DNA of 64,000 nt from Pseudomonas aeruginosa PAO1 (GCF_000006765.1 NC_002516.2); one strand, 5' to 3'. Counted from the stretch's first letter, positions 30,105 through 64,000 are shown. The notes: generated by a model from the letters alone, not told the origin. Numbers and translations are program-made.

Positions 30105-31082
30105 TCAGAACCACATGCGGATACCGGCGACGAAGCGCGCCTCGTCGTCGTCCTCGCCCTCGGCGCGGGCCAGGTCGGCGCTGTTGCCGTAGGAGCGGTT
30201 CCAGGTCACCCCGATGTAGGGCGCGAACTCGCGACGGATCTCATAGCGCAGGCGCAGGCCCAGCTCGCTATCGGCAAGGCCCGAACCGATGCCGCGGGCG
30301 GGATCGTTCCTGCCGTACAGGTTGACCTCGGCGCTGGGCTGGAGGATCAGCCGGTTGGTCAACAGGATGTCGTACTCGCCCTCCAGGCGCAGCGCGCTCT
30401 GGCCGTTCTCGCCGAGGAAGGCGGTGACTTCCGCCTCGAAGTCGTAGAGCGCCAGGCCCTGCACGCCGAACGCCGCCCAGGTCTGCGGCGAGCCGGGCTT
30501 GAAATCCTGGCGCACGCCGGCGACCAGGTCCCACCAGGGACCGATGGCGTGCCCGAACAGCGCCTGGACCTCGGCGTCCTCGGTCTTGCCGTCGAGCCGT
30601 TCGCCTTCGCTGCGCAGCCACAGGCGGTTGATGTCGCCGCCGATCCAGCCGCTGGCGTCCCAGGCCAGCGCGCTGCCGTCGTCGGCGTCCTGGTATTCCA
30701 ACTGGTCGAGCAGGAAGAAGCTGTTCAGCGCGCTGTCGTGCACCTTGTGCCCCTCCAGCGGCGGAAAGGCGGCACGGCGGTCGGCCTCGGTCGGCACCGG
30801 GATCGGCGTACGGCTCTGGCTGGACGCGGCCTGCGCCGGAGGTTGCCGCGCAGCGTGGCTCATCCCCGGCATCCGGCCATGGTCCATTCCCCGGTGCTCC
30901 ATGGGCTGTGCCGGGGCGGGCGATGCGGCGCCGTGGTCCATGCCAGGCATCGCGCCGTGGTCCATGGCCGAGTGCTCCATGCCATTGTCCTGCGCGGCCT
31001 CGACGGGATTCGGCAGGCCCAGCAGCAGACCCAGGGCGAGGGCACCGCCGGCCAGGCGGGCGGGTTTCGGCTGGCGGCTCAT
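30105..31082 (-). CDS. pcoB: Copper resistance outer-membrane protein B, 325 aa
   Basis: His/Met-rich N-terminus followed by a CopB barrel ([29 protein letters not shown]). Confidence 0.93.
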
Positions 31083-32977
31083 GCGTTGTCTCCTTCGTCT
31101 ACCCGCACTTCGCGGAACATGCCCATCTCCATGTGGAACAGCAGGTGGCAGTGGTAGGCCCAGCGCCCCAGGGCGTCGGCGGTGACCCGGTAGCTGCGGC
31201 GGGTGCCCGGCGGCATGTCGATGGTGTGCTTGCGCACCAGGAAGTTGCCTTGCTCGTCCTCCAGGTCGCTCCACATGCCATGCAGGTGGATCGGGTGGGT
31301 CATCATGGTGTCGTTGACCAGGACGATCCGCAGGCGCTCGCCGTAGGTCAGGCGCAGCGGCTCGGCGTCGGAGAACTTGATGCCGTCGAAGGACCAGGCG
31401 AACTTCTCCATGTGCCCGGTCAGGTGCAGCTCGATGGTGCGCCCCGGCTCGCGGCCGTCCGGGTCGGCGAAGCGGCTGCGCAGGTCGGCGTAGGTCAGCA
31501 CCCGCCGCCCGTTGTCGCGCAGGCCGAGGCCGGGGTCGGCGAGCTTCGGTGTCGGCGTCATGGTCTGCATGTCGACCAGCGGGTTGCCGTCCTCCGAAGC
31601 CGGATGGGACTGCATCGGCATGGCGCCCATGCCCATCCTGGAATGGTCCATGCCGTTCATGTCCATGCCGGCCATCTTGGAGTGGTCCATGCCGTTCATG
31701 TCCATGCCGGCCATCTTGGAGTGGTCCATGCCGCTCATGTCCATGCCGGCCATCTTGGAGTGGTCCATGCCGTTCACGTCCATGCCCGACATCTTCGAAT
31801 GGTCCATCTCGCTGGCGGGCCTCGTCGCCGCGCCATGCCCCATGGCGCCGTGGTCCATGCCGCCCATGCCCATGTCGTCCATGCCGATCAGCGGGCGCGG
31901 ATCGGGCGTCGGCACCGGCGCGCTAAGCCCTTCGGCCAGCGCCAGGGTGCCGCGGGCGTAGCCGCTGCGGTCCATGGACTGGGCGAAGAGGGTATAGGCG
32001 CGCTCGCCGCCCGGCTCGACGATCACGTCGTAGGTCTCGGCCACGGCGATGCGCAACTCGTCGACGCTGACCGGCTCGACGTGCTGTCCGTCGGCGGCCA
32101 CCACGGTCATCTTCAGGCCGGGAATGCGGACGTCGAAATAGCTCATTGCCGAGGCGTTGACGAAGCGCAGGCGGAGCTTTTCGCCGGGGCGGAACAGGCC
32201 GGTCCAGTTGCCGTCCGGCGGCTGTCCGTTGAGCAGGTAGGTATAGGTGTAGCCGCTGACGTCGGCGAGATCGGTGGGACTCATCTTCATCTCGGCCCAC
32301 ATCTTGCGGTCGGCCAGGGTCGCGGCCCAGCCGTTGGCGCTGACGTCGTCGATGAAGTCGCCGACGGTGCGCTTGTGGAAGTTGTAGTAGTCGGACTGCT
32401 TCTTCAGCTTGGCGAGGATGCGCTGCGGCTTCTCGTCCGACCAGTCGCTGAGCAGCACCACGTAGTCGCGGTCGTAGCTGAACGGTTCCGGCTCGCGGGC
32501 GTCGATCACCAGGGCGCCGTAGACCCCGGCCTGCTCCTGTAGCCCCGAGTGGCTGTGGTACCAGTAGGTGCCGTTCTGCCGGACCTTGAAGCGGTATTCG
32601 TAGAGACCGCCGGGAGCGATGCCCTCGAAGCTGAGGCCCGGCACGCCATCCATGTTGGCCGGCAGGATGATGCCGTGCCAGTGGATCGAGGTGTCCTCGG
32701 CGAGGCGGTTGCGCACCCGCAGGGTCACGTTGTCGCCTTCGCGCCAGCGCAGGGTCGGGCCGGGCAGCGAACCGTTGATGGTCATGGCGGCGGCCGGCGA
32801 GCCGCTGAGGTTCACCGGGGTCTCGCCGATGAACAGGTCGAAACTGTCGCCGGCGAGCAGGTTCTGCTGGCCCGGCCCGGCCAGGGCCCAGGCCGGGGCG
32901 CGCCAGAGACCCAGTCCGCCGAGCAGACCGGTGGCGGCGAGGCCTTTGACGAAGGTGCGTCGCGAAGTTCTGTGCAT
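31079..32977 (-). CDS. pcoA: Periplasmic multicopper oxidase, 632 aa
   Basis: Tat signal SRRTFVK and four copper motifs HWHG, WYHSH, HPIHLHG and HCHLLFH. Confidence 0.96.
31641..31807. repeat. 39-bp in-frame tandem repeat (about 4.3 copies) in pcoA encoding [13 protein letters not shown]
   Basis: TGGTCCAT recurs at 31644, 31683, 31722, 31761 and 31800, exactly 39 bp apart. Confidence 0.92.
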
Positions 32978-37541: not shown

Positions 37542-40184
37542 TCAGAAGCTGTAGCTGAGGCGGCCGAACAGGATGCGCCCGTAGGGATCGGTGTAGCGCG
37601 GGTCGTAGCCGCTCTGGAAGGTGTAGGTCTGGTTGCTGAACGGCGGTTCGCGGTCGAACAGGTTCTTCACCCCGAGGGTCAGCCCCAGCGCGTGGCTGAG
37701 GCGGTAGCTGCCGGCCAGGTCCCAGAGGTTCCACGAGCCGACCTTGCCGTGGCTGGCGCGGTCGTAGTCGTTGTAGCCGCTGGTGTAGCGGTTGCTCAGG
37801 GTGGCCTGCCAGGCGTCGCGGCTCCAGGTGGCGTTGGCGACGTGCTTCCAGCGGGCGATCACGCCGACGCCCTGGAAGTCGCCGACGTTGTCCAGGTACT
37901 GGCCGCCGATCTGCTGCTGGAAGTCGTAGCGGGACACGTAGGTGCCTTGCAGGTCGAGCCCGAACTGCCCGTAGCGGCTGGCCGGGAAACGATAATCGAG
38001 GCTCAGGTCGACGCCGCTGGTCTTCACTTTGCCGAGGTTGGCCAGTCCGGTGACGACGTGATCGATCGAGCCGTCGGCCTTGCGCACGATGCGTCCGGCG
38101 TAGGCCTGCGGGTCGGCGAAGATCGCCGCTTCGGGAAACTCGGCGATCTGGTTGGCGATCCTGATCCACCAGAAGTCCAGGCCGACGGAAAGGTCGCGCA
38201 GCGGCTGGTAGACCAGGCCCAGGGTAACGTTGCGCGCGGTTTCCGGTCGCAGGTCGGTATTGCCGCCGGTGGCGTTGTAGAACTGCTGGGCGCAGTCGCG
38301 GTTGGCGATGCCGCCCTGGCTCGGCTGGCCGCCGGCGCACAGGCGCGGGTCGTCGTAGTTGGCGCTGGTATAGGTGGTGAAGGTCGGGTTGTACAGTTCG
38401 TACAGCGACGGCGCACGGAAACCTTCGCTGTAGGCGCCGCGCAGGACCAACTGGCGGAACGGCTGGAAGCGGAACGAATATTTCGGGTTGCTGGTGCTGC
38501 CGAAGTCGCTGTACTTGTCGTGGCGGATCGCCGCGCTGAGTTCCAGGCTGTCCAGCACCGGCACGTTGAGTTCGGCGTACTGCGCCTTCAGGTTGCGCTC
38601 GCCGCTGACCGTGGCGGCGGGATCGACGCCGAGGCTCTGCACGTTGCCGGCGAAGTCCTGGATGTCCTGGTGGAACGCTTCCTTGCGGAACTCGCCGCCC
38701 AGCGCCAGGGCCGCCGGCCCGGCGCCGAACCAGTCGCCGATCTCCCGGCTGGCGCGGGCGTCCAGGCCCTTGACGCGGCCGACCGAGGTACGGAAGTCGC
38801 CGCTCAGGGCATGGCTGCCGAGGTAGGCGAGGCCGGCGTCGGTCTGCGGCCCGAACGGGTTCAGCGTCCCGTTGGCGATGCCGAGGGCGGCGGCGCGATC
38901 ATCGACGTAGCCGCTGTGGATATGGTCGACCACCTTGTTCTGGTTGTACGAGGCGCCGATATCGTAGTCCCAGCCGGCGAACTGGCCGTCGAAGCCGAGC
39001 AGCAGGCGCTGGCCGGTGTTCTGCGAGGATTGCAGGCGCGGCCCGAGCACGCTCTGTCGCCAGTTGACCTCCACCGGCCGGCTCGGGTCGAGGACGAAGC
39101 CGCCGGGTCCGGGAGTGATGCCGTTGCCGGGATAGAAGGCGGTGCCGGGATCGATCTGCAGGCCGGTGAGGGTCCCTGGGCCGACCTGGGTAGCGTTGTC
39201 GCTGCGCGACCAGAAGTACTCCAGGCTGACGTTGTGCTCGTCGGCCAGCTTGCCGGTGGCGCGGCTGAACACCGAGGTCTTCTCGGTTTCCGGCACCAGG
39301 TCGAGGTAGCGCCACAGGCTCTGCCGGCAGATGCCGTTGCGCGGAATCAGGTCGGCGCCCTTGCAACCGCCGGCGGCCAGCGGATTGCTGGCGTTGGCGC
39401 CCTGGCTCCAGTTGCCGGGGAAGGCGGTGCCGGAGCTGTAGTCGAGGCCGCGTCCCGGCTGGTAGTTGTAGGTGTAGCCGCGGTCCTTGGCGCCGAGGCG
39501 CTCCTGCTTGTCGTAGTTGGCCACCGCGAAGACATTGAAGCGATCCTCCTCCAGCTCGCCGAAGCCCCAGCTAGCGCTGACGTTGCGCTGGTTGCCGCCG
39601 CCGTCGTGGGTGGGGGAGGCGTAGCCGCTGTCGAAGCGGCCTTCGTTCAGGCTCTTGCGGGTGATGAAGTTGATCACCCCGCCGATGGCATCGGTGCCGT
39701 ACAGCGCGGAGGCGCCGTCGCGCAGCACCTCGACCCGGTCGATGGCGGCGAAGGGAATGGTGTTGAGATCCACCGCGGAGCCGTCGATGGCATTGTTCGC
39801 CAGGCGCCGGCCGTTGAGCAGCACCAGGGTCTTGTTCGCGCCGATTCCGCGCAGGTCGGCGAACGAGGCGCCGCCGGTGGCGCTGCCGACCGAGCGACTG
39901 GAGTTGTATACGCCCTGGTTGCCGGAAAGCCGGCCGATCAGTTCCTCGGTGCTGGTCACGCCCTGTTGGCGCAGCTCCTCGGCGCGCAGGACGCTGATCG
40001 GCACCGCGGTTTCCGCATCGACCCGGCGGATCGCGCTGCCGGTCACCTCGATTCGTTGCAACTGGACCGTGGGCGGGTCGACAGGCGCCTGTTCCTCCGC
40101 CGCGGCGGCGCTGCCGGGAGCGAGCTGCAGGGCCAGCAGCAGGGCGGCGCCCAGCGGCGCGTCGGTGTGGAGCGATCGGTGCAT
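37542..40184 (-). CDS. TonB-dependent receptor, 880 aa, no STN domain
   Basis: Signal peptide, TonB box IEVTGSAI, plug [17 protein letters not shown] and a C-terminal YSF. Confidence 0.92.
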
Positions 40185-51418: not shown

Positions 51419-53323
51419 TCAGAGGGTCTTCATGTACTCGACCAGGGCGCGGCGCTGCTGCTCGTTGAACTGCGCGTTGCCGTAGTCGTGGCCGCCATTG
51501 GCGTTGCCCGGCTTGCCGCTGTCGAAGAGGAAGCGGTTGGCGCCGCCGGCATCGGTGATGTAGCCGACGTTGACCGGGTCGAACTCGACGCTGCCGGTAT
51601 AGAAGGTCCGCGGCCGCAGGTCCGGCGGCAGCAGCAGGTCGTAGAGGGTCGCCACCGAGCCGTTGTGCAGGTAGGGCGGGCTGGCCCAGATACCGTTCAG
51701 CGGGCGCGCCTTGTAGGCCATCAGGTCGCTGGTCATCGCCAGGCACTGCTCCAGGCGCCGGGCCTTGTCGCTGTCGGCCGCGACGTTTTCGGCCAGGAGC
51801 AGGGCGCCTGGCGCGTCCGCGGCGGTCGCTTCGGCGCTGTCGGCGTCGGGGCTGTCCGGCACCGGACTGATCAGCGGCGGCAACTGCCCGTCGAAGATGC
51901 CCAGGGCGGCGGTCTGGAAGGCACCCAGGGCGACGCTCAGGCCGCGCGCGGCCAGGGCCTGGACCACCACTTCCTGGAGCACGTCCACCGCATAGGCCTG
52001 CTTGCCGTAGAAACCGCGCTGGCCGGTGCCGACGAAGGACAGGTAGGGCTTGCCGCGCACGTAGCCGGTCTTCAGTTGGGCGATGCTGTTGCAGGCGGTC
52101 CACGGGTCGGTGCCGATCGGCGCGACCTCGCCGCGCGCCTGCAGGTGGGTGAGCACGGTCTTCACCGGGGTCCGCAGGTCGTTGCGGTCCAGCGGCGTGT
52201 GGCAGCTGGAGCAATGTTGCCGGTACAGCTCGCGGCCCTCGGCGACCCTGGTCGGCTCCGGGGCGCCGAACAGCTGGTTCGGCCAGGCCGGCGGCTTCAG
52301 TTGGCCGAGCTGGTCTTCGATGCGGATCAGGTTGTCGACGTTGATGCTCGACGGGTAGCCGATGTGCAGCGCCGACTGGATCGGGCTGAGCACCTTGACG
52401 TCGGCGAATACCCCGACCGCCTCGCCGGCGTTGCGCGCCAGGGCGCCGACGTCGAACTTGCGGTTGTCGATGTCGACCACGTTGATGTGGTTCGGGTTGA
52501 AGCCGGTCCACTGCACGCGGTCCAGCTGCGGTACGTTCCACAGGAACGGATAGCTCACGGGGGCGTCCTCGGCGCCGTAGATCTGCTCGTCGGCGTGCAG
52601 TTCGTAGCCCACCGAGTTGAAGATCGAACCGATGGCGTCCAGGCGGCCCGGGCCGAACTCGGGATCGTGCGGCAGGTTGAAGTGCGAGCCGTCGCGCAGG
52701 CGCACGATGGTGGCGTCCAGGGCTGCCTGCAGGCGCGCCTTGTTGGCGTCGTTGTAGCCGCTGACCAGGCCGTCGGCGCCGAGCACCTTGCGGGCGAAGC
52801 GCTCGAACTTGGCGGTGTCGGCGCGGGTGCTCTGCAGGGCGCCGAGGATCTCCAGCTGGAAGCCGGCGAGGTCGCCCATGGTCTGCCCGCCGTAGACGGT
52901 CAACTGGGTGCCCTGGTAGCTGATGTGCGAGGTGTGGCACATGCTGCAGGTCGGTCCGACCCAGGGTTCCCTGGAGCCCTGCAGGGCTTTCCAGCGCAGC
53001 TTGGTGAAGGTCAGGTCGCTGTCGTCGCTGCGGTCGACCGCGTAGCCCTGCACCACCTTCACGCTGGAACCGCCGAGGGTGTGCGGGACATAGCCGTACT
53101 GGCGGATCAGCGCATCGGACATCAGCGGTTCTTCGCTGGCGCGCTGCTCCAGCGCCACCAGCCAGGCCAGCGGCAGCATCCGCGAGCCCTGGCCGGCTTC
53201 CAGCCAGGCGGTCTTCTGGGTCTGGTTCCAGCCCTGGTCGAGGTCGACGCCGCTGTCGTCGGCGAATGCCGGGGCACCGGCGAGGACGGAAAGGATGGCA
53301 AGGCTGAGTCGCGATAGGGTCAT
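51419..53323 (-). CDS. Di-heme cytochrome c peroxidase/RoxA-like enzyme; oleate 10S-dioxygenase by synteny, 634 aa
   Basis: Signal peptide, CSMCH and CSSCH heme motifs, and YKARPLNGIWASPPYLHNGSV. Confidence 0.85.
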   Translation of the reverse strand: MTLSRLSLAILSVLAGAPAFADDSGVDLDQGWNQTQKTAWLEAGQGSRMLPLAWLVALEQRASEEPLMSDALIRQYGYVPHTLGGSSVKVVQGYAVDRSDDSDLTFTKLRWKALQGSREPWVGPTCSMCHTSHISYQGTQLTVYGGQTMGDLAGFQLEILGALQSTRADTAKFERFARKVLGADGLVSGYNDANKARLQAALDATIVRLRDGSHFNLPHDPEFGPGRLDAIGSIFNSVGYELHADEQIYGAEDAPVSYPFLWNVPQLDRVQWTGFNPNHINVVDIDNRKFDVGALARNAGEAVGVFADVKVLSPIQSALHIGYPSSINVDNLIRIEDQLGQLKPPAWPNQLFGAPEPTRVAEGRELYRQHCSSCHTPLDRNDLRTPVKTVLTHLQARGEVAPIGTDPWTACNSIAQLKTGYVRGKPYLSFVGTGQRGFYGKQAYAVDVLQEVVVQALAARGLSVALGAFQTAALGIFDGQLPPLISPVPDSPDADSAEATAADAPGALLLAENVAADSDKARRLEQCLAMTSDLMAYKARPLNGIWASPPYLHNGSVATLYDLLLPPDLRPRTFYTGSVEFDPVNVGYITDAGGANRFLFDSGKPGNANGGHDYGNAQFNEQQRRALVEYMKTL

Positions 53324-53362
53324 CGGGCGGTTCTCTCTATTGGGCATGTGGGCGGGGCCGGC

Positions 53363-55237
53363 TCACAGGGTCTTGAGGTATTCGAGCAACGCCAGGCGCT
53401 GGCTTTCGTCGTACTCGCGGGCGAAGTCGTGGCCGGCGTTGGAGTTGCCTTCCAGGTGGGTGTCGAAGAGGAAGGCGTTGTCCGGGCCGGGCGCGGTGAG
53501 GTAGCCGACCCGGCTCGGATCGAACTCGTGGCTGCCGGTGTAGAAGGTGGCCGGCCGTTGCTCCTGGGGCAGCAGCAGGTCGTACAGCGACGGCACCGAA
53601 CCGTTGTGCAGGTAGGGTGCGGTGGCCCAGATGCCGTTCAGCGGGCGAGCGATGTAGCCGAGGAATGGATGCTCGGTATTCAGGCAGTAGTCCTTGCGCG
53701 CACTCTTGTCGGTGGGGACTTCGCCGGCGGCGAGGCTCTGCGCCTGGCTGTCGGCAGGGGCGGCGCCGGCCAGCAGCAATTGTCCGGCGGGCACCGCTTG
53801 CAGGCTGTCGGAGCCGGGCAGGGTCTGCTGCCCGGTGACGATGGCGTGGATGATCTCGGCGATGCCGTCGGCCAGCTGGCCTTTCTTGCCGAGCATGATC
53901 TGGAACACCTCGGGGACCTGCATGTCGGCGATCTTCGAAGTCCGCCCGACGATGCCGACGCCGCTGGGGGTGCCGAGGGACGGTCGGAACAGGCCGAAGT
54001 AGTTGCCGCTGGGGCTGCTGAAGGTGAAGGTGTTGCAGGCCATCCACGGGTCGGTGCCGATCGGCGCGTCGTCGCCATGGGCCTTCAGGCGCACCTGGCG
54101 GACCTTGATCGGGGTTTGCAGGTCGTCGCGGCCGATGCTCGCATGGCAGGCCGCGCAGTTCTCCTCGTAGAGGCGCTTGCCCTGGGCCAGCCTGGCGCTG
54201 TCCGGGGCGCCGAACAGCTGGCTCGGCCAGGCCGGCGCCTTGAGCTTGTGGATCAGGCCCTCGACACGGGTCAGGTTGTCCACGCGGATGCTCGATATAT
54301 AGCCCTCCAGGCCGGACAGCGGATGGCTGACCACGTCGCCGTAGTCGCCCTGGACCACGCCGATGTCGCCGGCCAGGTAGCCGAGGTCGAAGACCTGGCC
54401 GTTGAGGTCGAGGACCTTGACGTTGGGCACGAATCCGCTGGATTGCAGCTTGTCCATCTGCAACGTGTGCCACAGTGCCGGGAAGCTGGTCGGCGCGTCG
54501 GTCGGGTTCGCTTGCAGATGGCGGGCGCCGGAGTTGATTGCCGCGCGGTTGAGTGACTGGCCGGTGGCGTCGAGGCGCCCCGGGCCGGGTTGCAGGTCGG
54601 TCGCGGACATGCTCAGCAGGGTGTCGATCAGCGCCGCGCGTTTGACCAGGGCGGCCTTCAGCAGCTCGCGGTTGGCCGGGCTGTCCTCGCTGCCGAGGAC
54701 GTTGCCGGCGAAGCGCGCGAACTTGTCGCCGTCGTCGCTGGTGCGGCGCAGCGCGGCGAGCACTTCGTCGAAGATCGCCTGGACGTTGGCCAGGGTGGCG
54801 CCGGCGTCGACGGTCAGTTCGCTGCCACGGTAACTGATGTCGGTGGAGTGGCAGCCGGCGCAATTCAGCCCGACCCAGGGTTCGCTGGACGACTGGCGGG
54901 CTTTCCAGCGCAGGCGGGTGTCGGAGAACTGGCTGTCGTCCTGCTGGTCGAGGGCGAAGCCGCGCGGCAGGCGCAGTTCGCCGCCTTGCCAGTTGCGCAG
55001 GGGAAAGCCGAGGCGCCGGGCGTTGTCTTCGGAGAACAGGCGCTCCTCGCTGTCCGGACGCTCCAGCGCCTGGGCCCAGGCCAGCGGCAGCAGCCGCGAA
55101 CCGAGCGAGGCGTCGTACCAGGAGGCGCGTTGCTCGGCGTTCCAGCCTTGCTCGAGCTGGATTTCGGTGGCGACGGCAGGGCTGCCGGCGGCGGCCAGTG
55201 CGGCGGCCAGCAGGACCCGCGAAAAGGTCGGATGCAT
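53363..55237 (-). CDS. Di-heme paralogue; 7,10-hydroperoxide diol synthase by synteny, 624 aa
   Basis: Signal peptide, CAGCH and CAACH heme motifs, and ARPLNGIWATAPYLHNGSV. It is a tandem paralogue of the downstream gene. Confidence 0.85.
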   Translation of the reverse strand: MHPTFSRVLLAAALAAAGSPAVATEIQLEQGWNAEQRASWYDASLGSRLLPLAWAQALERPDSEERLFSEDNARRLGFPLRNWQGGELRLPRGFALDQQDDSQFSDTRLRWKARQSSSEPWVGLNCAGCHSTDISYRGSELTVDAGATLANVQAIFDEVLAALRRTSDDGDKFARFAGNVLGSEDSPANRELLKAALVKRAALIDTLLSMSATDLQPGPGRLDATGQSLNRAAINSGARHLQANPTDAPTSFPALWHTLQMDKLQSSGFVPNVKVLDLNGQVFDLGYLAGDIGVVQGDYGDVVSHPLSGLEGYISSIRVDNLTRVEGLIHKLKAPAWPSQLFGAPDSARLAQGKRLYEENCAACHASIGRDDLQTPIKVRQVRLKAHGDDAPIGTDPWMACNTFTFSSPSGNYFGLFRPSLGTPSGVGIVGRTSKIADMQVPEVFQIMLGKKGQLADGIAEIIHAIVTGQQTLPGSDSLQAVPAGQLLLAGAAPADSQAQSLAAGEVPTDKSARKDYCLNTEHPFLGYIARPLNGIWATAPYLHNGSVPSLYDLLLPQEQRPATFYTGSHEFDPSRVGYLTAPGPDNAFLFDTHLEGNSNAGHDFAREYDESQRLALLEYLKTL

Positions 55238-57084: not shown

Positions 57085-58335
57085 TCAGGTCACCTTGTGC
57101 CGGACCTGGTAGCGCGGCTCTTTCCAGGCTTCGCTCTGGAGGATTTCCAGCAACGCCTGCACCGCATCCCAGACCTCGACGAAGCGGGTGTAAAGCGGGG
57201 TGAAGCCGAAGCGCAGGATGCCCGGCTCGCGGTAGTCGCCGATTACCCCCCGGTCGATCAGGGCCTGGACGATGGCGTAGCCCTGGGCATGCTCGAAGCT
57301 GACATGGCTGCCGCGCCGGGCATGCTCGCGCGGGGTCACCAGGGTCAGGCCGAAGCGTTCGCAACGGCTTTCCACCAATTCGATGAACAGATCGGCGAGG
57401 GCCAGCGACTTGTCGCGCAGGCGCTGCATGTCGGTCCGGGCGAAGATATCCAGGCCGCATTCGACCAGGGCCAGCGAGGTGATCGGCTGGGTGCCGCAGA
57501 GGAACCGGGTGATGCCTTCGCCGGGCTGGTAGCGCGGCTCCATGGCGAACTGGCGGGAATGACCGAACCAGCCGGACAGCGGTTGCCAGACACGCTCGCG
57601 CAGGCGCGGCGCGACCCACACGTAGGCCGGCGAGCCGGGGCCGCCGTTGAGGTACTTGTAGGTGCAGCCGATGGCGTAGTCGGCGTCGGCCGCGTGCAGG
57701 TCCAGCGGCAGCGCGCCGGCCGAGTGGGCCAGGTCCCAGATCGCCAGGGCGCCGTTTTCGTGGACCAGGCGGGTGACCTCGCGCATGTCGTGCAGGTAGC
57801 CGGTCTTGTAGTTGACATGGCTGAGCATCACCACCGCGGTATCCGCGTCGATCGCCGCCGGCAATTGCTCCGGGTCATCTACCAGGCGTAGCCGGTAGCC
57901 GCGCTGGAGCATGTCGGTAAGGCCCTCGGCGATGTACAGATCAGTGGGGAAGTTGCTCGATTCGGAAACGATCACCTTGCGCCCTGGCGCGTCTTCCTCC
58001 TGGATCCGTAGGGCGGCGCTGAGCACCTTGAACAGGTTGATCGATGTGGTGTCGGTGATCACCACTTCGCCGGCGCGCGCGCCGATCAGGGGCGCCAGCT
58101 TGTCGCCGAGGCGCTCCGGCAGGCCGCGCCAGTCGGCGCTGTTCCAGCTGCGGATGAGCCCCTCGCCCCATTCCGCGGCGACCACTTCGGCGGCGCGCTC
58201 CACGGCGGCCCGGGGGCGGGCGCCGAGGGAGTTGCCGTCGAGGTAGATCACGCCGTCGGGCAGGGCGAACAGTTGGCGCAGGTCGGCCAGGGGATCGCCG
58301 GCGTCGAGCGCCAGGCAGTCGTCACGAGTGGTCAT
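57085..58335 (-). CDS. kynU: Kynureninase, 416 aa
   Basis: Motifs [16 protein letters not shown] and [11 protein letters not shown]. Confidence 0.96.
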
Positions 58336-58338
58336 CGG

Positions 58339-58980
58339 TTACTCCGCGGTAGGCAGGGCGCGCAGCACGGCACGCACCGGGCTGGCATCGAGGTGGGTGA
58401 ATTTCAGCGGCAGGGCGAGTAGTTCGTAGTCGCCGGCGGGCACGTCGTCGAGGACCACGCCTTCGAGGATCGCCATGCCGTGGCGGCCCACCGCGTGGTG
58501 GGCGTCGAGGGTCTTGGAGTGCTGGGGGTCGAGCGACGGGGTGTCGATGCCGACCAGCCTGACGCCGCGCTCGGCGAGGCACTCGATGGTGGCCGGAGCG
58601 ATAGCGCAGAAGCCTTCCGGCCAGTTCGCCGGGACCCGTTCGAAGGTCCGTAGCAGCACCCGCGAGGGCAGGTCGTCGAGCTGGCCGGCGAGGTGTTCGG
58701 GGGTCACCAGCGGGTTAGCGCCGATACAGTGGATCACCCGGCACGGTCCCATGTAGATGTCCAGCGGCACCTGGCCGATGGGCAGGCCGTCGGCGCGGTA
58801 GTGCAGGGGGCCGTCGACGTGGGCGCCGGTATGCGGCGAAAGGGTGATCCGGCCGACGTTGACCGGGCACTGCTCGTCCAGCCGCGCCGCCCATTCCTGC
58901 TGGAACGGCGTGTCGCCGGGCCAGGTCGGCGTGTTCGGGTCGAGGGCGGGACTGATGTCCCAGTAGCGGAGCGAAGTCAT
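58339..58980 (-). CDS. kynB: Kynurenine formamidase (cyclase family), 213 aa
   Basis: Motifs [19 protein letters not shown] and DASPVRAVL. Confidence 0.95.
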
Positions 58981-59027
58981 TGTTTTTCTCCGGAAGTCCA
59001 GCGAATGATAATGAACGAGATTTCGGA

Positions 59028-59079
59028 GAATTTTCGTGCGAAATGCAAGGTCGCATGGCAGTCTGTTCGCACAAAATTC
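59028..59079. promoter_or_regulatory. Inverted repeat in the kynB-kynR divergent region (probable KynR site)
   Basis: GAATTTTCGTGCGAA ... TTCGCACAAAATTC. Confidence 0.5.
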
Positions 59080-59112
59080 GAAGATAGCTATTCATTCTGA
59101 TAGGAATTGCAC

Positions 59113-59589
59113 ATGTCCCTGGACGCCATCGATCTGCGCATTCTCCGTCACCTGCAGCAGGACGGGCGGATGAGCAACCAGGACCTGGCGGAGAAGGTCT
59201 CCCTCTCGCCATCCGCCTGCCTGCGCCGGCTGCGCCTGCTGGAAAGCGAGGGGATCATCCGCGGCTACTCGGTGGAACTGGATGCCGAGCGACTGGGCGT
59301 GGAGCTGGAAGCCATCGTCCATGTGTCGCTGCGCCAGGACGTCGAGGGTTGGCACGAGGCGTTCATCGCCAGGGTCCGGGACTGGCCGGAGGTGGTCACC
59401 GCCTATGTGGTGACCGGCGCCACCAACTATGTGCTACGGGTCCGGGCGCGCAACCTCAAGCACTATTCGGACTTCATCGTGAACAAGCTGAACCGCGCCG
59501 CCGGCGTCACCGACATCCGCTCGGAAATCGTCCTGCAGGAGATCAAGGCCGGTGCCGACCTGCTCGACCTGGTGAACCTGAAGAGTTGA
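59113..59589 (+). CDS. kynR: Lrp/AsnC regulator of kynBU, 158 aa
   Basis: LDAIDLRILRHLQQDGRMSNQDLAEKVSLSPSACLRR is an Lrp HTH; it is divergent from kynB. Confidence 0.92.
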   Translation: MSLDAIDLRILRHLQQDGRMSNQDLAEKVSLSPSACLRRLRLLESEGIIRGYSVELDAERLGVELEAIVHVSLRQDVEGWHEAFIARVRDWPEVVTAYVVTGATNYVLRVRARNLKHYSDFIVNKLNRAAGVTDIRSEIVLQEIKAGADLLDLVNLKS

Positions 59590-59790
59590 ACGGGGCGACC
59601 CCTCATAAAAGCATGAGTGCAATGAGAGGGACGAATTTTCAGTCGCCGAGGGAAATAATTATTTTGTCTTTTTTCATGGGGTTACGAGTTATTAGCTAAT
59701 GAATAAATAGTCTGCCGGAATTGATTTTCCCCGTGCTAGGTTTCCTCCGTCCCCGTTGCCGGGTTGTCAACGTTACACGGAGGTTAGGCG

Positions 59791-61065
59791 GTGAGTGAAT
59801 ATATCGAGACCGACGACGCAAGTTACTTCCGGGTCAGGCGCCAGGCCTATGTTTCCGCGGAACTGCACCGGCGCGAACTGCACGAGATATTCGACGACAG
59901 CTGGCTGTATGCCGCCCACCTCAGCGAACTGCGCGAGCCCGGCGACTTCATCACCCGCGACGTCGGCGGGCGCAACCTGATCATCCAGCGTCGCGCCGAT
60001 GGCGAGCCGGCGGTCTACCTGAACGCCTGCGCGCACCGTGGGGCCAAGGTCTGCGCCGAGCGCCAGGGCAACAGCCAGCGTTTCACCTGTCCCTACCATG
60101 GCTGGACCTACGACAGCCACGGCAGCCTGATCGGCCTGCCGGACAAGGCCGCCTACCAGCATGCCGGGCAATGCCATCCGGAGCTGTCCCTGACACAGGT
60201 GAAACACGCGGTCTACCGCAACTTCCTGTTCATCCACTACGGCGCCCGGCAAGCGTCCCTGGAAACCTACCTGGGCCAGGCGAAGGACTATATCGACCTG
60301 ATCTGCGACCAGTCCGAGGCGGAACTGGAGATCATCCCCGGCGGCTTCGAGCATTCGATCAAGGCCAACTGGAAGCTGCTCGCGGAAAACGGCGTGGACG
60401 CCTACCACCTGCCGTTCGCCCACAAGCGCTACCTGGAATACCTGAATACCCTCGGCACCGATCCGGAGTCGCACAAGCGCCATGGCCGCGGCGAAGCGCT
60501 GGGCAACGGCCACGCGCTGATCATCAGCGGCCCGCCGTCCACCGGACGGCCGATCGCCTACTGGAGTCCGTTGTTCCCGGAAGCGCTCAAGCCGTCCATC
60601 GCCGCCAAGTTCGAACGCCTGGTGGAACGCTTCGGGCAGGCGCGGGCAGAGGACATCGCCCACACCAACAAAAGCCTGTTCATCTTTCCCAACCTGGTGA
60701 TCAACGACATCCTCGGCCTGAACATCCGCTCGTTCTTCCCGACCGCCGCCGATGAGGTCAGCGTCACCGTATGGGGCGCCGGCTTCGCCGATGAGACCCG
60801 CGAGGAGCGGGCGGCGCGGATCAATGGGTTGATCTCGTTCATCGGCCCGGGCGGTTTCGGCACCCCCGACGACGTCGAGATCCTCGAATCCTGTCAGCGC
60901 GCCTACGCCCACGCCGCCCTCGGCTACAGCGATTTTTCCCGCGGCATGGGACCGGCAACCCGCCGCCACGTCGACGAGGAGCAGAACCGCGGCTTCTGGC
61001 GCGAGTGGAGCCGCCGGCTCGGGCAGCAGCCCGCCGCCCTGCGGCGTCTCGCCGTGGCCGTCTGA
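59791..61065 (+). CDS. Rieske ring-hydroxylating oxygenase alpha subunit, 424 aa
   Basis: Rieske motifs CAHRG and CPYHGW, mononuclear Fe motif ENGVDAYHLPFAH, and DDVEILE. GTG start. Confidence 0.93.
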   Translation: MSEYIETDDASYFRVRRQAYVSAELHRRELHEIFDDSWLYAAHLSELREPGDFITRDVGGRNLIIQRRADGEPAVYLNACAHRGAKVCAERQGNSQRFTCPYHGWTYDSHGSLIGLPDKAAYQHAGQCHPELSLTQVKHAVYRNFLFIHYGARQASLETYLGQAKDYIDLICDQSEAELEIIPGGFEHSIKANWKLLAENGVDAYHLPFAHKRYLEYLNTLGTDPESHKRHGRGEALGNGHALIISGPPSTGRPIAYWSPLFPEALKPSIAAKFERLVERFGQARAEDIAHTNKSLFIFPNLVINDILGLNIRSFFPTAADEVSVTVWGAGFADETREERAARINGLISFIGPGGFGTPDDVEILESCQRAYAHAALGYSDFSRGMGPATRRHVDEEQNRGFWREWSRRLGQQPAALRRLAVAV

Positions 61066-61152
61066 GCCGTCTTCAACCATCGCTCCCTGCAGATCCCTGC
61101 GCGCCGCCCTGGCTACGCGGGGAATAAAGGGTCACTGCAAGGAACGTCATCC

Positions 61153-62985
61153 ATGTGTGGAATCACCGGCTGGACCGACTGGAGCCGCGACCTCGGCGAG
61201 CAGCGCAGCATCCTCGAACGCATGACCCGTACCCTGGCCCCGCGCGGGCCGGACGCCGAAGGCCTGTGGCTGTCGCGGCACGCGCTGCTCGGCCATCGGC
61301 GCCTGGCGATCATCGACCTGGAGAACGGCGCCCAGCCGATGCTTGCCGAGGCTGGCGGGCGGGTGGCGCTGACCTACAGCGGCGAGGTCTACAACTTCCG
61401 CGAGCTGCGCGCCGAGCTGGAGACGCTGGGCCAGGTCTTCCGCACCCGCTCGGACACCGAAGTGGTGCTGCGCGCCTATCTGCAATGGGGCGAGGCTTCC
61501 TTCGTCCGGCTCCGCGGCATCTACGGCTTCGCCCTGTGGGACGAGCGCGAGCAGAGCCTGTGGCTGGTGCGCGATCGCTTCGGGGTCAAGCCGCTGTACT
61601 ACTACCCGACCGCCGGAGGCGTGCTGTTCGCCTCGGAACCCAAGGCGATCTTCGCCAACCCCGAGGCCAACCCGGTGCTCGACGCCAGCGGCATCGCCGA
61701 GCTGTTCGCCCTGACCACCGCGCCGACTCCCGGCCACGGCCTGTACAAGGGCCTGCGCCAGGTCCGGCCGGGCCAGGCGCTGCGCTTCGACCGCAATGGT
61801 GTGCGCGAGTTGGTCTACTGGGCGCTGCGCGCGGAACGTCACGAAGAGGGCGCCGAGGACAGCGCCGAACGCGCCGGCCAGTTGCTCCGCGAGGCGGTGG
61901 CCGAGCAACTGGTGGCCGACGTCCCGCTGGGCAGCCTGCTTTCCGGCGGGCTAGACTCCAGCGCCATCAGTGCCTTCGCGGTGGCCGCGCTGGATGGCGA
62001 CGCGCGGCGCCTGCCGACCTTCTCCGTGGACTTCCCCGGCGAAGGCCGCGGCTTCGTCCCGACGCCCTGGCAAAGCAGCTGGGACGAACCCTATGCGCAG
62101 CTGGCGGCGAACTTCCTCGGTACGCCGCACCGTACCGTGCTGGTCGCCCCGGAAGAGGTGCTGGAACAGGACGAGGCGGTGCTCCAGGCCCGCGACCTGC
62201 CCGGCTGGGGCGAGCTGGACGCCTCGCTCTACCTGCTGTTCCGCCAGGTCCGCGAGCACACCACGGTGGCACTGTCGGGCGAGTCGGCCGACGAGGTGTT
62301 CGGCGGCTACCCGTTCTTCCACGACCCGAGCGCCCTCGCACACGACGGCTTCCCCTGGCTGGCCGGCAAGAGCGGGCCCTGGCAACTGCTGCGGCGGGAG
62401 GTCGCCGAACGGGTGGCGGCGCCGGAATACATCCGGGCGCGCTACCGCGAGGCCCTCGCCGAAGTGCCGCGGCTGGATGGCGAGGATGCCGCCCAGCGAC
62501 GCCAGCGCGAGGTCGCCTACCTGGCGCTGAGCCGCTGGCTGCCGGCGATGCTCGAACGCAAGGACCGGATGAGCATGGCGGTCGGCCTGGAAGTGCGCGT
62601 GCCGTTCTGCGACCACCGCCTGGTGGAGTACGTATGGAACCTGCCCTGGGCGCTGAAGAGCGTCGCCGGGGAAAGCAAGAGCCTGCTGCGCCGGGCCCTG
62701 CGCGGGCACCTGCCGCAGGCGATCCTGGAGCGGCGCAAGAGCGGTTTCCCGGCCAACCCCGACCCACGTTACCTGGCGCTGCTGCGCGAGCGGGTCGGCC
62801 GCCTGCTCGACGACGGCCGCTCGCCGCTGTTCGAACTGGTGGACGCCGGGCGGGTCCGCCAGGCTCTCGAACAGGGCACGCCGCTGCCCAGCCCGCGTGC
62901 CTCGGCGAGCCCGACCGCCGGCCTGGCCTACCTGCTGAACCTGGACCGCTGGCTGACCCGCCATGGGGTCGACATCAGCCTCTGA
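61153..62985 (+). CDS. AsnB/PhzH-like glutamine-dependent amidotransferase, 610 aa
   Basis: Ntn N-terminal MCG, plus RGPD, SGGLDSS, LSGESADEVFGGY and LEVRVPFCD. Confidence 0.92.
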   Translation: MCGITGWTDWSRDLGEQRSILERMTRTLAPRGPDAEGLWLSRHALLGHRRLAIIDLENGAQPMLAEAGGRVALTYSGEVYNFRELRAELETLGQVFRTRSDTEVVLRAYLQWGEASFVRLRGIYGFALWDEREQSLWLVRDRFGVKPLYYYPTAGGVLFASEPKAIFANPEANPVLDASGIAELFALTTAPTPGHGLYKGLRQVRPGQALRFDRNGVRELVYWALRAERHEEGAEDSAERAGQLLREAVAEQLVADVPLGSLLSGGLDSSAISAFAVAALDGDARRLPTFSVDFPGEGRGFVPTPWQSSWDEPYAQLAANFLGTPHRTVLVAPEEVLEQDEAVLQARDLPGWGELDASLYLLFRQVREHTTVALSGESADEVFGGYPFFHDPSALAHDGFPWLAGKSGPWQLLRREVAERVAAPEYIRARYREALAEVPRLDGEDAAQRRQREVAYLALSRWLPAMLERKDRMSMAVGLEVRVPFCDHRLVEYVWNLPWALKSVAGESKSLLRRALRGHLPQAILERRKSGFPANPDPRYLALLRERVGRLLDDGRSPLFELVDAGRVRQALEQGTPLPSPRASASPTAGLAYLLNLDRWLTRHGVDISL

Positions 62986-63012
62986 GCGGCACTTTCTTCC
63001 CGGAGGATACTC

Positions 63013-63522
63013 ATGAGCCTTGCCTTGTCCCGTCCCGACAGCGACCTGCTGGCGCGGGTCAGCGATTTCCTCGTCGCCGAAGCCGAGCTGCTCGACGACC
63101 GCCTGCTGGATACCTGGTTCGCGCTGTTCGAGCGCGCCGCACGCTACCGGGTGCTGCCCTTGCAGGAGCAACTGGCCGGCCAGGCGCCGGAGGACAGCCT
63201 GTACATCATCGACGACGACCACGTGCGCCTGCGCGAGCGGGTCGACAGCATCCTCGGCGGGCATACCTGGATGGAGCAGCCGCGCTCGCGCACCCGCCGC
63301 CTGGTGGGCAACGTGCGGCTGAAGCGGGTCGAGGGCGAACTGGTCAGCAGCCGCAGCAACTTCGTCGTCCATCAGTTCCGCAACCGCGAGGCCTGGAGCT
63401 TCGTCGGCGAAGCCAGTCATGTCCTGCGCGACGGCCCCGGGGGCTTGCGCATCGTCTCGCGGGAGATCCGCCTGGACCACGAGACCATCAGCGCCCAGCG
63501 GCGCATCAGCATCATCCTGTGA
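63013..63522 (+). CDS. Ring-hydroxylating oxygenase beta subunit, 169 aa
   Basis: FLVAEAELLDDR, EQPRSRTRRLVGNV and IVSREIRLD (SnoaL-like beta subunit). Confidence 0.92.
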   Translation: MSLALSRPDSDLLARVSDFLVAEAELLDDRLLDTWFALFERAARYRVLPLQEQLAGQAPEDSLYIIDDDHVRLRERVDSILGGHTWMEQPRSRTRRLVGNVRLKRVEGELVSSRSNFVVHQFRNREAWSFVGEASHVLRDGPGGLRIVSREIRLDHETISAQRRISIIL

Positions 63523-63532
63523 GGCGCCGCCC

Positions 63533-64000
63533 ATGAATACCGATCCGTTGCTGCCCGGCTTCGACTACCTGACCCTGCACACCTCCGCCGCGCGCCTCCG
63601 CGTCGCCGTGAAGGGCAGCGGCCCGCCGCTGCTGCTGTTGCATGGCTATCCGCAGACCCACCTGGCCTGGCATCGCATCGCTCCGCGCCTGGCCGAGGAC
63701 TACAGCGTGGTCCTCGCCGACCTGCGCGGCTATGGCGAATCGCGGGCGCTGGACGAGGAGGGCGCCGACTATTCCAAGGCCGCGCTGGCCCGCGACCAAC
63801 TGGAAACGATGGGCCAGCTAGGCTTCGAACGCTTCGCGGTGATCGGCCACGACCGCGGCGCGCGGGTCGGCTATCGCCTGGCGCTGGACCATCCGCAAGC
63901 GGTCGCGGCCTTCGTCTCGCTGACCGTGGTGCCGATCCTCGACAACTGGGCCGCGGTGAACAAGGTCTTCGCCCTCAACGCCTACCACTGGTTCCTCCTC
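63533..64000 (+). CDS. Alpha/beta hydrolase, fluoroacetate dehalogenase/epoxide hydrolase-like (partial, runs off the window)
   Basis: Translation MNTDPLLPGF...LLHGYPQTH...DLRGYG...GHDRGARV...YHWFL. Confidence 0.88.
   Translation, partial: MNTDPLLPGFDYLTLHTSAARLRVAVKGSGPPLLLLHGYPQTHLAWHRIAPRLAEDYSVVLADLRGYGESRALDEEGADYSKAALARDQLETMGQLGFERFAVIGHDRGARVGYRLALDHPQAVAAFVSLTVVPILDNWAAVNKVFALNAYHWFLL

Follow-up and report, generated by a model that had tools for sequence, protein, structure and literature searches.

Among described members of the asparagine synthetase B (AsnB) family, the nearest to the gene examined here is TsnB9, the hydroxyamidotransferase of trichostatin A biosynthesis, which moves hydroxylamine from glutamic acid gamma-monohydroxamate onto a carboxylate. 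The substrate in this group is a bulky or aromatic carboxylate, and the TsnB9 homolog SaHAT makes benzohydroxamic acid. FzmA frees hydrazine from glutamylhydrazine; TsnB9 and FzmA are thus precedents in this branch of the family for modified nitrogen donors. PhzH is an AsnB-family enzyme of similar length, glutamine-dependent, that amidates an aromatic carboxylate in Pseudomonas by converting phenazine-1-carboxylate to its carboxamide. The gene in question is PA2084, found in a 64,000-nucleotide stretch of Pseudomonas aeruginosa PAO1 (NC_002516.2), all of which is called the window below, where it lies between the genes for the large (alpha) and small (beta) subunits of a Rieske oxygenase. The locus is PA2083-PA2086, the head of an island of about 12 genes, PA2083-PA2094. 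Judged by its sequence and its predicted structure, PA2084 is a specialised AsnB-family enzyme and not a housekeeping asparagine synthetase.

PA2084 (61153..62985, + strand) encodes a 610-residue amidotransferase of the N-terminal nucleophile (Ntn) type, with matches to GATase_7 (1e-44) and Asn_synthase (2.9e-101) and a Met-Cys N-terminus. The best solved relative is TsnB9 (PDB ID: 7ylz), with E = 6e-162 and an alignment that is colinear over residues 1-601, whereas E. coli AsnB scores 2.5e-43 and aligns in three separate blocks. In an alignment including K-12 AsnB, PA2084 is 44% identical to TsnB9; for E. coli AsnB the figure is 30%. The AlphaFold (AF2) model has a predicted local distance difference test (pLDDT) score of 91.3. 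Foldseek superimposes it on 7ylz with template modeling (TM) scores of 0.90/0.95 and a root-mean-square deviation (rmsd) of 2.1 A, and on E. coli AsnB 1ct9 with a TM of 0.68 and an rmsd of 5-6 A. The first-pass annotation had proposed a specialised AsnB-family enzyme lodged between the two subunits, and the TsnB9 architecture, seen both by sequence and by fold, agrees with that. Common to PA2084 and TsnB9 are Cys1, the PP-loop, a Ser at the Asn74-equivalent position, and inserted regions that E. coli AsnB lacks. E. coli AsnB (1CT9) has the same two-domain fold of Ntn glutaminase and PP-loop synthetase, and the same catalytic residues, but it is compact and has Asn74, and in neither respect does PA2084 resemble it.

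These comparisons also weigh on the suggestion that PA2084 is a low-sulfur isozyme of asparagine synthetase that has come to sit by chance in a dioxygenase operon. Such an isozyme would agree with the score of 494 bits against the broad asparagine-synthase model TIGR01536 (cutoff 267), with a catalytic core in which Cys1, Arg49, Glu76, Asp98, the SGGLDS PP-loop and the equivalent of Glu348 are all kept, and with a content of just 2 Cys, one of them catalytic, and 5 Met. It does not agree with the failure of PA2084 against the AsnB equivalog NF006949 (270.5 against a cutoff of 499), with the low identity, the three-block alignment and the TsnB9-type inserted regions, or with the replacement of Asn74. 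Nor would it account for a position between alpha and beta kept over 64-78% divergence, or for strict coupling to a partner protein, described below, in non-housekeeping contexts across phyla. We place this explanation last, as very improbable. Where E. coli AsnB and most outgroup rows have Asn74, PA2084 has Ser (residue 75), and almost all sequences of the AsnB1 and TsnB9/AsnB2 clades introduced next have Ser, Ala or Gly; this replacement may mark enzymes that use modified glutamine donors. Positions 376 and 384, considered as Asp-binding positions of AsnB, were dropped as uninformative, since all sequences other than that of E. coli, the outgroups among them, have other residues there.

A maximum-likelihood tree of 39 sequences puts PA2084 in a clade that we call AsnB1 (core support 96/96), together with other Pseudomonas sequences, two further assemblies, Rhodomicrobium and many actinobacteria. 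The sister group, with support 95/96, is made up of TsnB9 and a second paralog, AsnB2. From this sister-clade position, PA2084 is TsnB9-like but outside the TsnB9 subfamily. Unlike TsnB9, it also has the clade-specific motifs TAPTPGHG and LPSPRA, and it is accompanied by a partner with four conserved cysteines, called the 4-Cys protein here.

The partner is PA2087, of 218 residues and with no Pfam match. Each of the ten distinct AsnB1 loci examined (L001, L002, L003, L023, L025, L027, L028, L031, L032 and L034, with L004 being the same contig as L027) encodes a homolog of it, at 39-70% identity, no more than a few kb from AsnB1, and at L025 the 4-Cys protein is fused to a methyltransferase. 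By tblastn, none of the 18 loci L005-L022, which hold more distant AsnB-like genes, has a PA2087 homolog. The family is rare, with 47 representatives among 1.84 billion proteins, and its four cysteines are invariant. No Pfam, NCBIfam or PDB sequence match to it was found even with a 25-sequence profile, and the label "ATC hydrolase" that it bears in UniProt/UniRef was not reproduced by current Pfam. The structural model has a pLDDT of 89.6 and resembles H-NOX and Bet3-type proteins only weakly in fold. A kinship of the H-NOX, V4R and ATC-hydrolase domains, with a common Cys cluster, has been described (PMC5847659), which fits the fold result. The 4-Cys protein may be a ligand-binding or ring-opening protein.

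On either side of PA2084 are the genes for the Rieske enzyme. The alpha subunit, PA2083 (59791..61065, + strand, 424 residues), is a Rieske non-haem iron oxygenase large subunit by its matches to Rieske PF00355 (1.3e-18) and Ring_hydroxyl_A PF00848 (3.5e-14), and begins at a GTG with GGAGG 6-7 nt upstream. The beta subunit, PA2085 (63013..63522, + strand, 169 residues), matches Ring_hydroxyl_B at 4.6e-43. Next is the alpha/beta hydrolase PA2086 (63533..64000, + strand; Abhydrolase_1 3.4e-24), of which the first 155 codons are present before the end of the window cuts the gene. All four genes are on the same strand, with gaps of 87, 27 and 10 nt from PA2083 to PA2086. The run of alpha, 610-residue amidotransferase, beta and hydrolase beside kynBU had been read from the sequence on first pass, and the open reading frames were found just there. 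That the operon would go on past the window was likewise correct, as further island genes follow in a longer P. aeruginosa locus (L024). The pathway had also been called undescribed, and no biochemical characterisation was found in the searchable literature.

The alpha translation has the CxH...CxxH cluster motif and the D-x2-H-x4-H iron motif, so that the hallmarks of the alpha3beta3 type of Rieske oxygenase are present: cluster motif, catalytic domain with H-x4-H, and a separate beta subunit. The best NCBIfam models for alpha are BenA, at 237 bits with a cutoff of 781, and AntA, at 203 with a cutoff of 672. Alpha as a benzoate or anthranilate 1,2-dioxygenase was ruled out, since both equivalog scores are far under cutoff. 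The best PDB match is naphthalene dioxygenase (8.6e-45), and the nearest NCBIfam model for beta is of the HcaF type, under cutoff. There is a step in alpha identity, with orthologs at 58% or more and everything else at 50% or less. Partial proteins entered as P. aeruginosa match alpha and PA2084 at 97-99% identity, with 99% for an alpha match. The first-pass annotation saw no reductase or ferredoxin, and we agree: a cognate one for the Rieske enzyme was found neither in the window region and the next 10 kb of L024 nor at L001, L025, L034, L029 or L030.

PA2086 belongs to the fluoroacetate-dehalogenase/epoxide-hydrolase type of alpha/beta hydrolases. Its full-length sequence, taken from L024, matches PDB ID: 4b9a, "probable epoxide hydrolase", at E = 1e-202, with fluoroacetate dehalogenases next at 3e-83, and it is alone among these genes in having crystal structures (4b9a and others). 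For the beta gene there is a phenotype. A passage of PMC2809737, citing Dötsch et al., gives a PA14 transposon mutant in it (PA14_37550) as having 16-fold higher piperacillin resistance, and the same passage has the gene missing from strain PA7. The phenotype and the absence from PA7 are explained by none of the models considered here.

The genes upstream of alpha had suggested a substrate. Before it stands an Lrp/AsnC regulator, kynR (59107-59589, + strand), and then, on the - strand, the arylformamidase gene kynB (58339-58980; TIGR03035 347 bits, cutoff 223) and the kynureninase gene kynU (57085-58335; TIGR01814 344, cutoff 246). In the model taken from the first-pass annotation, an enzyme like PhzH puts an amide on phenazine-1-carboxylate, anthranilate or a quinoline carboxylate that the kynurenine genes provide, with oxidation by the Rieske enzyme. 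In its favor, kynBU is physically adjacent, PA2084 falls in the broad group of AsnB homologs whose substrates are bulky carboxylates other than amino acids, and the best models for alpha are the benzoate and anthranilate dioxygenases, though far under cutoff. The link to kynBU and anthranilate is unsupported on two counts. The adjacency, including kynR, is absent in L001, L025 and L034, and under sulfur starvation kynB moves by just +0.64 log2 (PMC12581299 supplements) while PA2083-PA2094 rise by +2.5 to +4.6; kynBU adjacency is neither conserved nor co-regulated.

As for PhzH itself, the three motifs that had been quoted as PhzH-like are indeed in PA2084, but their cores (RGPD..W, DTEV.L..W and R.DR.SM...E.RVP) do not vary among 24 AsnB-family sequences with identities as low as 39%, and have clear counterparts in E. 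coli AsnB. Being invariant across the family, they give no specific indication of PhzH. The best 120 database matches to PA2084 are all at least 53% identical, and the P. aeruginosa entries among them are just copies of PA2084 at 97-99% identity, with P. aeruginosa PhzH not ranked there; a special closeness of PA2084 to PhzH could not be shown, as far as ranking among the best 120 can tell. The P. aeruginosa island locus (L024) has no phz gene, and the regulation is opposite, with phz genes (phzS and phzB1) down under sulfur starvation (PMC12581299 supplements) and PA2083-PA2094 up. Taken together, we consider amidation of a phenazine or kynurenine product improbable.

The interleaved order of alpha, AsnB and beta had been claimed on first pass, and it proves to be conserved in four Pseudomonas-type lineages, P. 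aeruginosa and three others. In all of them the order is alpha-AsnB-beta-hydrolase-4Cys-methyltransferase, followed by transport genes. The three others are Pseudomonas sp. LRF_L74 (L001, 78% identity), a metagenome contig (L034, alpha 76% identity) and a more distant assembly (L025, AsnB 64% identity), in which the alpha stop overlaps the AsnB start. The flanks of the island differ, being kynBU in P. aeruginosa, a receptor and an MFS gene in L001, and genes of the integrative and conjugative element (ICE) type in L034; it follows that the island moves as a unit and that the kynBU adjacency is not conserved. In L034 (1-9478), the island is directly beside genes for ParA, AlpA, DUF2857, AcaB, DUF3158, SSB and a topoisomerase. 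The ICE-type neighbors suggest horizontal transfer.

Two further loci, L029 and L030, have alpha orthologs with 63-65% identity in which the beta gene comes directly after alpha with overlapping stop and start, and the AsnB gene is absent. Since alpha and beta are there coupled without an insert, the AsnB1 gene was inserted between them in the Pseudomonas lineage. In these two loci, which are from two different taxa (L029 10001-13837 and L030 10001-14318), the alpha/beta pair is two genes from a chorismate synthase gene. The product scores as a true AroC, and a functional linkage is indistinguishable from chance. The L029 pair is also near a TonB receptor, an MFS gene and a methyltransferase gene. 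Some P. aeruginosa isolates have frameshifted alleles (L024 10001-12385 and 14861-17527; P0002, P0003, P0128), among them a PA2084 that reads on out of frame to 793-794 residues, a 596-residue alpha-AsnB fusion and a shortened transducer gene, and in such strains the island seems to be in decay.

Beyond the window, L024 continues with the rest of the hydrolase, PA2087 and an S-adenosylmethionine (SAM) methyltransferase, and further downstream with an STN-domain TonB-dependent transducer, a luciferase-like monooxygenase and two MFS carriers. There is a regulatory pair, an extracytoplasmic function (ECF) sigma factor with a FecR-type anti-sigma, and together with the STN transducer this makes a cell-surface signalling set that is found in both L024 and L001. 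The flavin monooxygenase of the island is nearest to SsuD/MsuD, and the MFS carriers are one of the lactate/oxalate type and one of a Cmx/MxcK-like efflux type. For the transducer, no informative characterised relative was found, and it is not of the siderophore-receptor subfamily. The presumed regulatory region of the first operon of the island is the AT-rich intergenic stretch 5' of the alpha gene (59590..59790, + strand), where GC goes down to 0.58 from about 0.68-0.70 in the flanks. A scan of 58900-64000 found neither a sigma-70 consensus promoter nor a terminator-like site; the absent sigma-70 promoter is compatible with an alternative promoter, ECF or other.

What the island responds to is in the literature, sparse as this is for these genes. 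PA2083-PA2094 has been predicted as an "extracellular sulfate locus" with a sigma factor, PA2093, that responds to sulfate limitation (PMC6555301). In sulfur-starved PAO1, the log2 changes in RNA are +4.59 for PA2083, +3.69 for PA2084, +3.18 for PA2085, +3.27 for PA2086, +3.19 for PA2087, +2.47 for PA2088, +3.02 for PA2089, +3.64 for PA2090, +2.82 for PA2092, +3.28 for PA2093 and +3.20 for PA2094, and in protein +4.03 for PA2083, +2.49 for PA2084, +2.41 for PA2085, +2.21 for PA2086 and +1.18 for PA2087 (PMC12581299 supplements). In PA14, the island genes are co-regulated with the ssu, tau and ats genes.

Sulfate-starvation-induced proteins reportedly have little Cys and Met. For 34 other genes of the window the median share of Cys and Met together is 2.4%. 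Of the nine island proteins between PA2083 and PA2092, eight have 0-2.1%; the ninth, the 4-Cys protein PA2087, has 2.8%, and the sigma factor PA2093, at 5.4%, is not depleted. The SsuD-like monooxygenase has neither Cys nor internal Met in 359 residues, and the lack of internal Met holds in three lineages. There is 1 internal Met each in alpha and beta, and beta has no Cys. Among alpha sequences, Met is 0.94% in orthologs and 1.88% in paralogs (Mann-Whitney p=0.0065). With its published induction and its low Cys and Met content, the island qualifies for the sulfate-starvation-induced (SSI) regulon. Neither this status nor the cell-surface signalling system was recognised on first pass, and the preference expressed there for biosynthesis over catabolism becomes less certain.

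Two other proteins of the window stand out in composition. An 880-residue TonB-dependent receptor (37542-40184, - strand) has no internal Met and just 4 Cys; by map position it appears to be PA2070, up +5.92 log2 in the sulfur-starvation proteome (PMC12581299 supplements), and thus a second sulfur-starvation protein of the window. At the opposite extreme to the island proteins is a multicopper oxidase of the PcoA/CopA type (31079-32977, - strand), with 6.8% Met, the highest in the window.

Outside Pseudomonas, AsnB1 is part of a different assembly. In Embleya, Streptomyces, Mycobacteroides, Rhodomicrobium and L031, a module is formed by the 4-Cys protein, AsnB1 and AsnB2, usually with an MFS protein (L027 2458-15031; L032 6174-15045; L031 1072-6854; L028 7306-14340). 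A 3-deoxy-D-arabino-heptulosonate 7-phosphate (DAHP) synthase accompanies it in Embleya, Mycobacteroides and L031 (L027, L032 and L031), not in Rhodomicrobium, and some loci add an amidase, SARP regulators, and importers of the Opp/Nik type or a TonB receptor. In Mycobacteroides there is also an HpaB-type aromatic hydroxylase with its flavin reductase. The module has the look of an orphan pathway supplied by the shikimate route, and its contents suggest that the AsnB1 substrate is an aromatic acid, for which an aromatic hydroxylase would be a natural companion.

One may ask if the P. aeruginosa island is itself biosynthetic, building and tailoring a small aromatic amide or hydroxamate of shikimate origin, such as a chelator or signal, with one MFS carrier exporting the product, the TonB transducer and the sigma/anti-sigma pair sensing and re-importing it, and sulfur starvation merely the trigger. 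TsnB9, the nearest characterised relative, tailors a secondary metabolite, and the AsnB homologs Dip5, OxyD/DacD-type and ActJ/MatC have been proposed as amidating enzymes of the same kind. The actinobacterial and Rhodomicrobium modules, with their DAHP synthase, second AsnB-like gene, MFS, SARP regulators and high-affinity importers, point the same way, as does the HpaB-type hydroxylase of Mycobacteroides, in a role that the Rieske enzyme could fill here. The island has a methyltransferase and a Cmx/MxcK-like efflux carrier, and its layout is like that of siderophore loci with cell-surface signalling. However, the P. aeruginosa island (L024) is without DAHP synthase and the second AsnB gene, and a scaffold-forming enzyme is absent from it; its SsuD-like monooxygenase and sulfur-depleted proteins point to scavenging; its receptor falls outside the siderophore-receptor subfamily; and siderophore genes fall under sulfur starvation (PMC12581299). 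We rank biosynthesis second and, on this balance, as rather unlikely.

The reading that we rank first, tentatively and at somewhat short of an even chance, is that the island serves to take up and process an organic acid, probably an aromatic one, when sulfur is short. An extracellular acid of this kind would be sensed and imported by way of the transducer and an MFS carrier. PA2084 would adenylate the carboxylate of this non-amino-acid substrate and swap its OH for nitrogen that the Cys1 glutaminase site releases from glutamine or one of its derivatives. The alpha3beta3 Rieske enzyme would oxygenate the same scaffold, with electrons from a reductase encoded elsewhere, and the SsuD-like monooxygenase and the hydrolase would finish the route, its purpose being to cope with sulfur shortage, most simply by scavenging sulfur from the compound. 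By analogy with the rest of its family, the chemistry of PA2084, carboxylate adenylation and use of Cys1-derived nitrogen, would be the same in every reading given here. Regulation, the sulfur-poor composition and the SsuD/MsuD-like monooxygenase place the island in the sulfur-scavenging response, and the signalling transducer with the lactate/oxalate-type MFS carrier suggests uptake of an external organic acid.

Several points weigh against uptake and processing. An amidation that consumes ATP and glutamine is without a known place in sulfur scavenging. The AsnB1 and 4-Cys module outside Pseudomonas looks biosynthetic in the company of its DAHP synthase, second AsnB-like gene, MFS exporter and SARP regulators, and the methyltransferase and efflux-type MFS carrier of the island fit biosynthesis too. 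The search of the island (L024) for a reductase or ferredoxin to serve the Rieske enzyme came up empty, and the transducer is like no characterised receptor.

The remainder of the window has other genes of note. Between 18795 and 27332 (+ strand) is an STN-domain TonB-dependent transducer followed by a four-gene ATP-binding cassette (ABC) importer of the PA2057-PA2061 type, another signalling uptake system. Tandem genes for proteins of about 630 residues (51419-53347 and 53363-55237, - strand) have a short RoxA-like cytochrome c motif as their sole Pfam match, and are flanked by an amino-acid permease gene and a LysR gene. Elsewhere are EF-G and a CHASE4-GGDEF-EAL protein, and the content of the window agrees with the PAO1 map.

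The gene annotation has been known since 2000, and the sulfur regulation is published. What is new is that PA2084 is TsnB9-like, that the AsnB1 clade has an obligate 4-Cys partner, that AsnB1 was, on the evidence, inserted between coupled alpha and beta genes, and that the island is mobile; the arguments against links to kynBU and PhzH are new as well. Almost every P. aeruginosa keeps the island, and the sulfur limitation by which it is strongly induced has been discussed in connection with the lung in cystic fibrosis. Solving the island would show why an ATP-driven amidation belongs in the sulfur-starvation response. Placing PA2084 beside TsnB9 rather than AsnB, together with the constant 4-Cys companion, leads to concrete and cheap assays. 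As the AsnB1 and 4-Cys module is widespread in actinomycetes, solving either system would inform the other.

It remains to set the locus against the systems it most resembles. As here, the genes of the TsnB6/7/9 cassette for an oxygenase and its accessory subunit adjoin that of a TsnB9-like transferase, and a methyltransferase gene is close. A reading of TsnB7/TsnB6 as Rieske alpha/beta subunits was rejected, since TsnB7 is an AurF-like di-iron N-oxygenase according to two papers. With TsnB7 not a Rieske enzyme, the resemblance to the P. aeruginosa trio is at most analogous, and the AurF-like TsnB7 and the TsnB6 helper are absent from the 22-kb P. aeruginosa locus. The trio could still be a non-homologous counterpart of TsnB6/7/9, in which the Rieske enzyme would N-hydroxylate glutamine or the nascent amide, and PA2084 with its 4-Cys partner would transfer hydroxylamine to an aromatic carboxylate. 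We take this to be a long shot. If true, P. aeruginosa would make an aryl hydroxamate under sulfur starvation, which would give a major pathogen a new metabolite and two-subunit Rieske oxygenases a new reaction.

BenAB, AntAB, CmtAb/Ac (p-cumate) and HcaEF (phenylpropionate), which supply the best family models or homolog names, are like the Rieske pair here in joining an alpha with Rieske and catalytic domains to a beta subunit. The pair here differs from them in equivalog scores far under cutoff, in the unrelated gene that parts alpha from beta, and in the absence of a reductase gene. Sulfur limitation induces the ssu, msu, sfn and ats systems of Pseudomonas as it does the island; their proteins are likewise low in Cys and Met, and they too have an SsuD/MsuD-like monooxygenase dependent on reduced flavin mononucleotide (FMNH2) and a TonB-dependent receptor. 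Unlike the island, which has all of these, they are without Rieske alpha/beta subunits, an AsnB-family enzyme, a methyltransferase and a sigma/anti-sigma pair.

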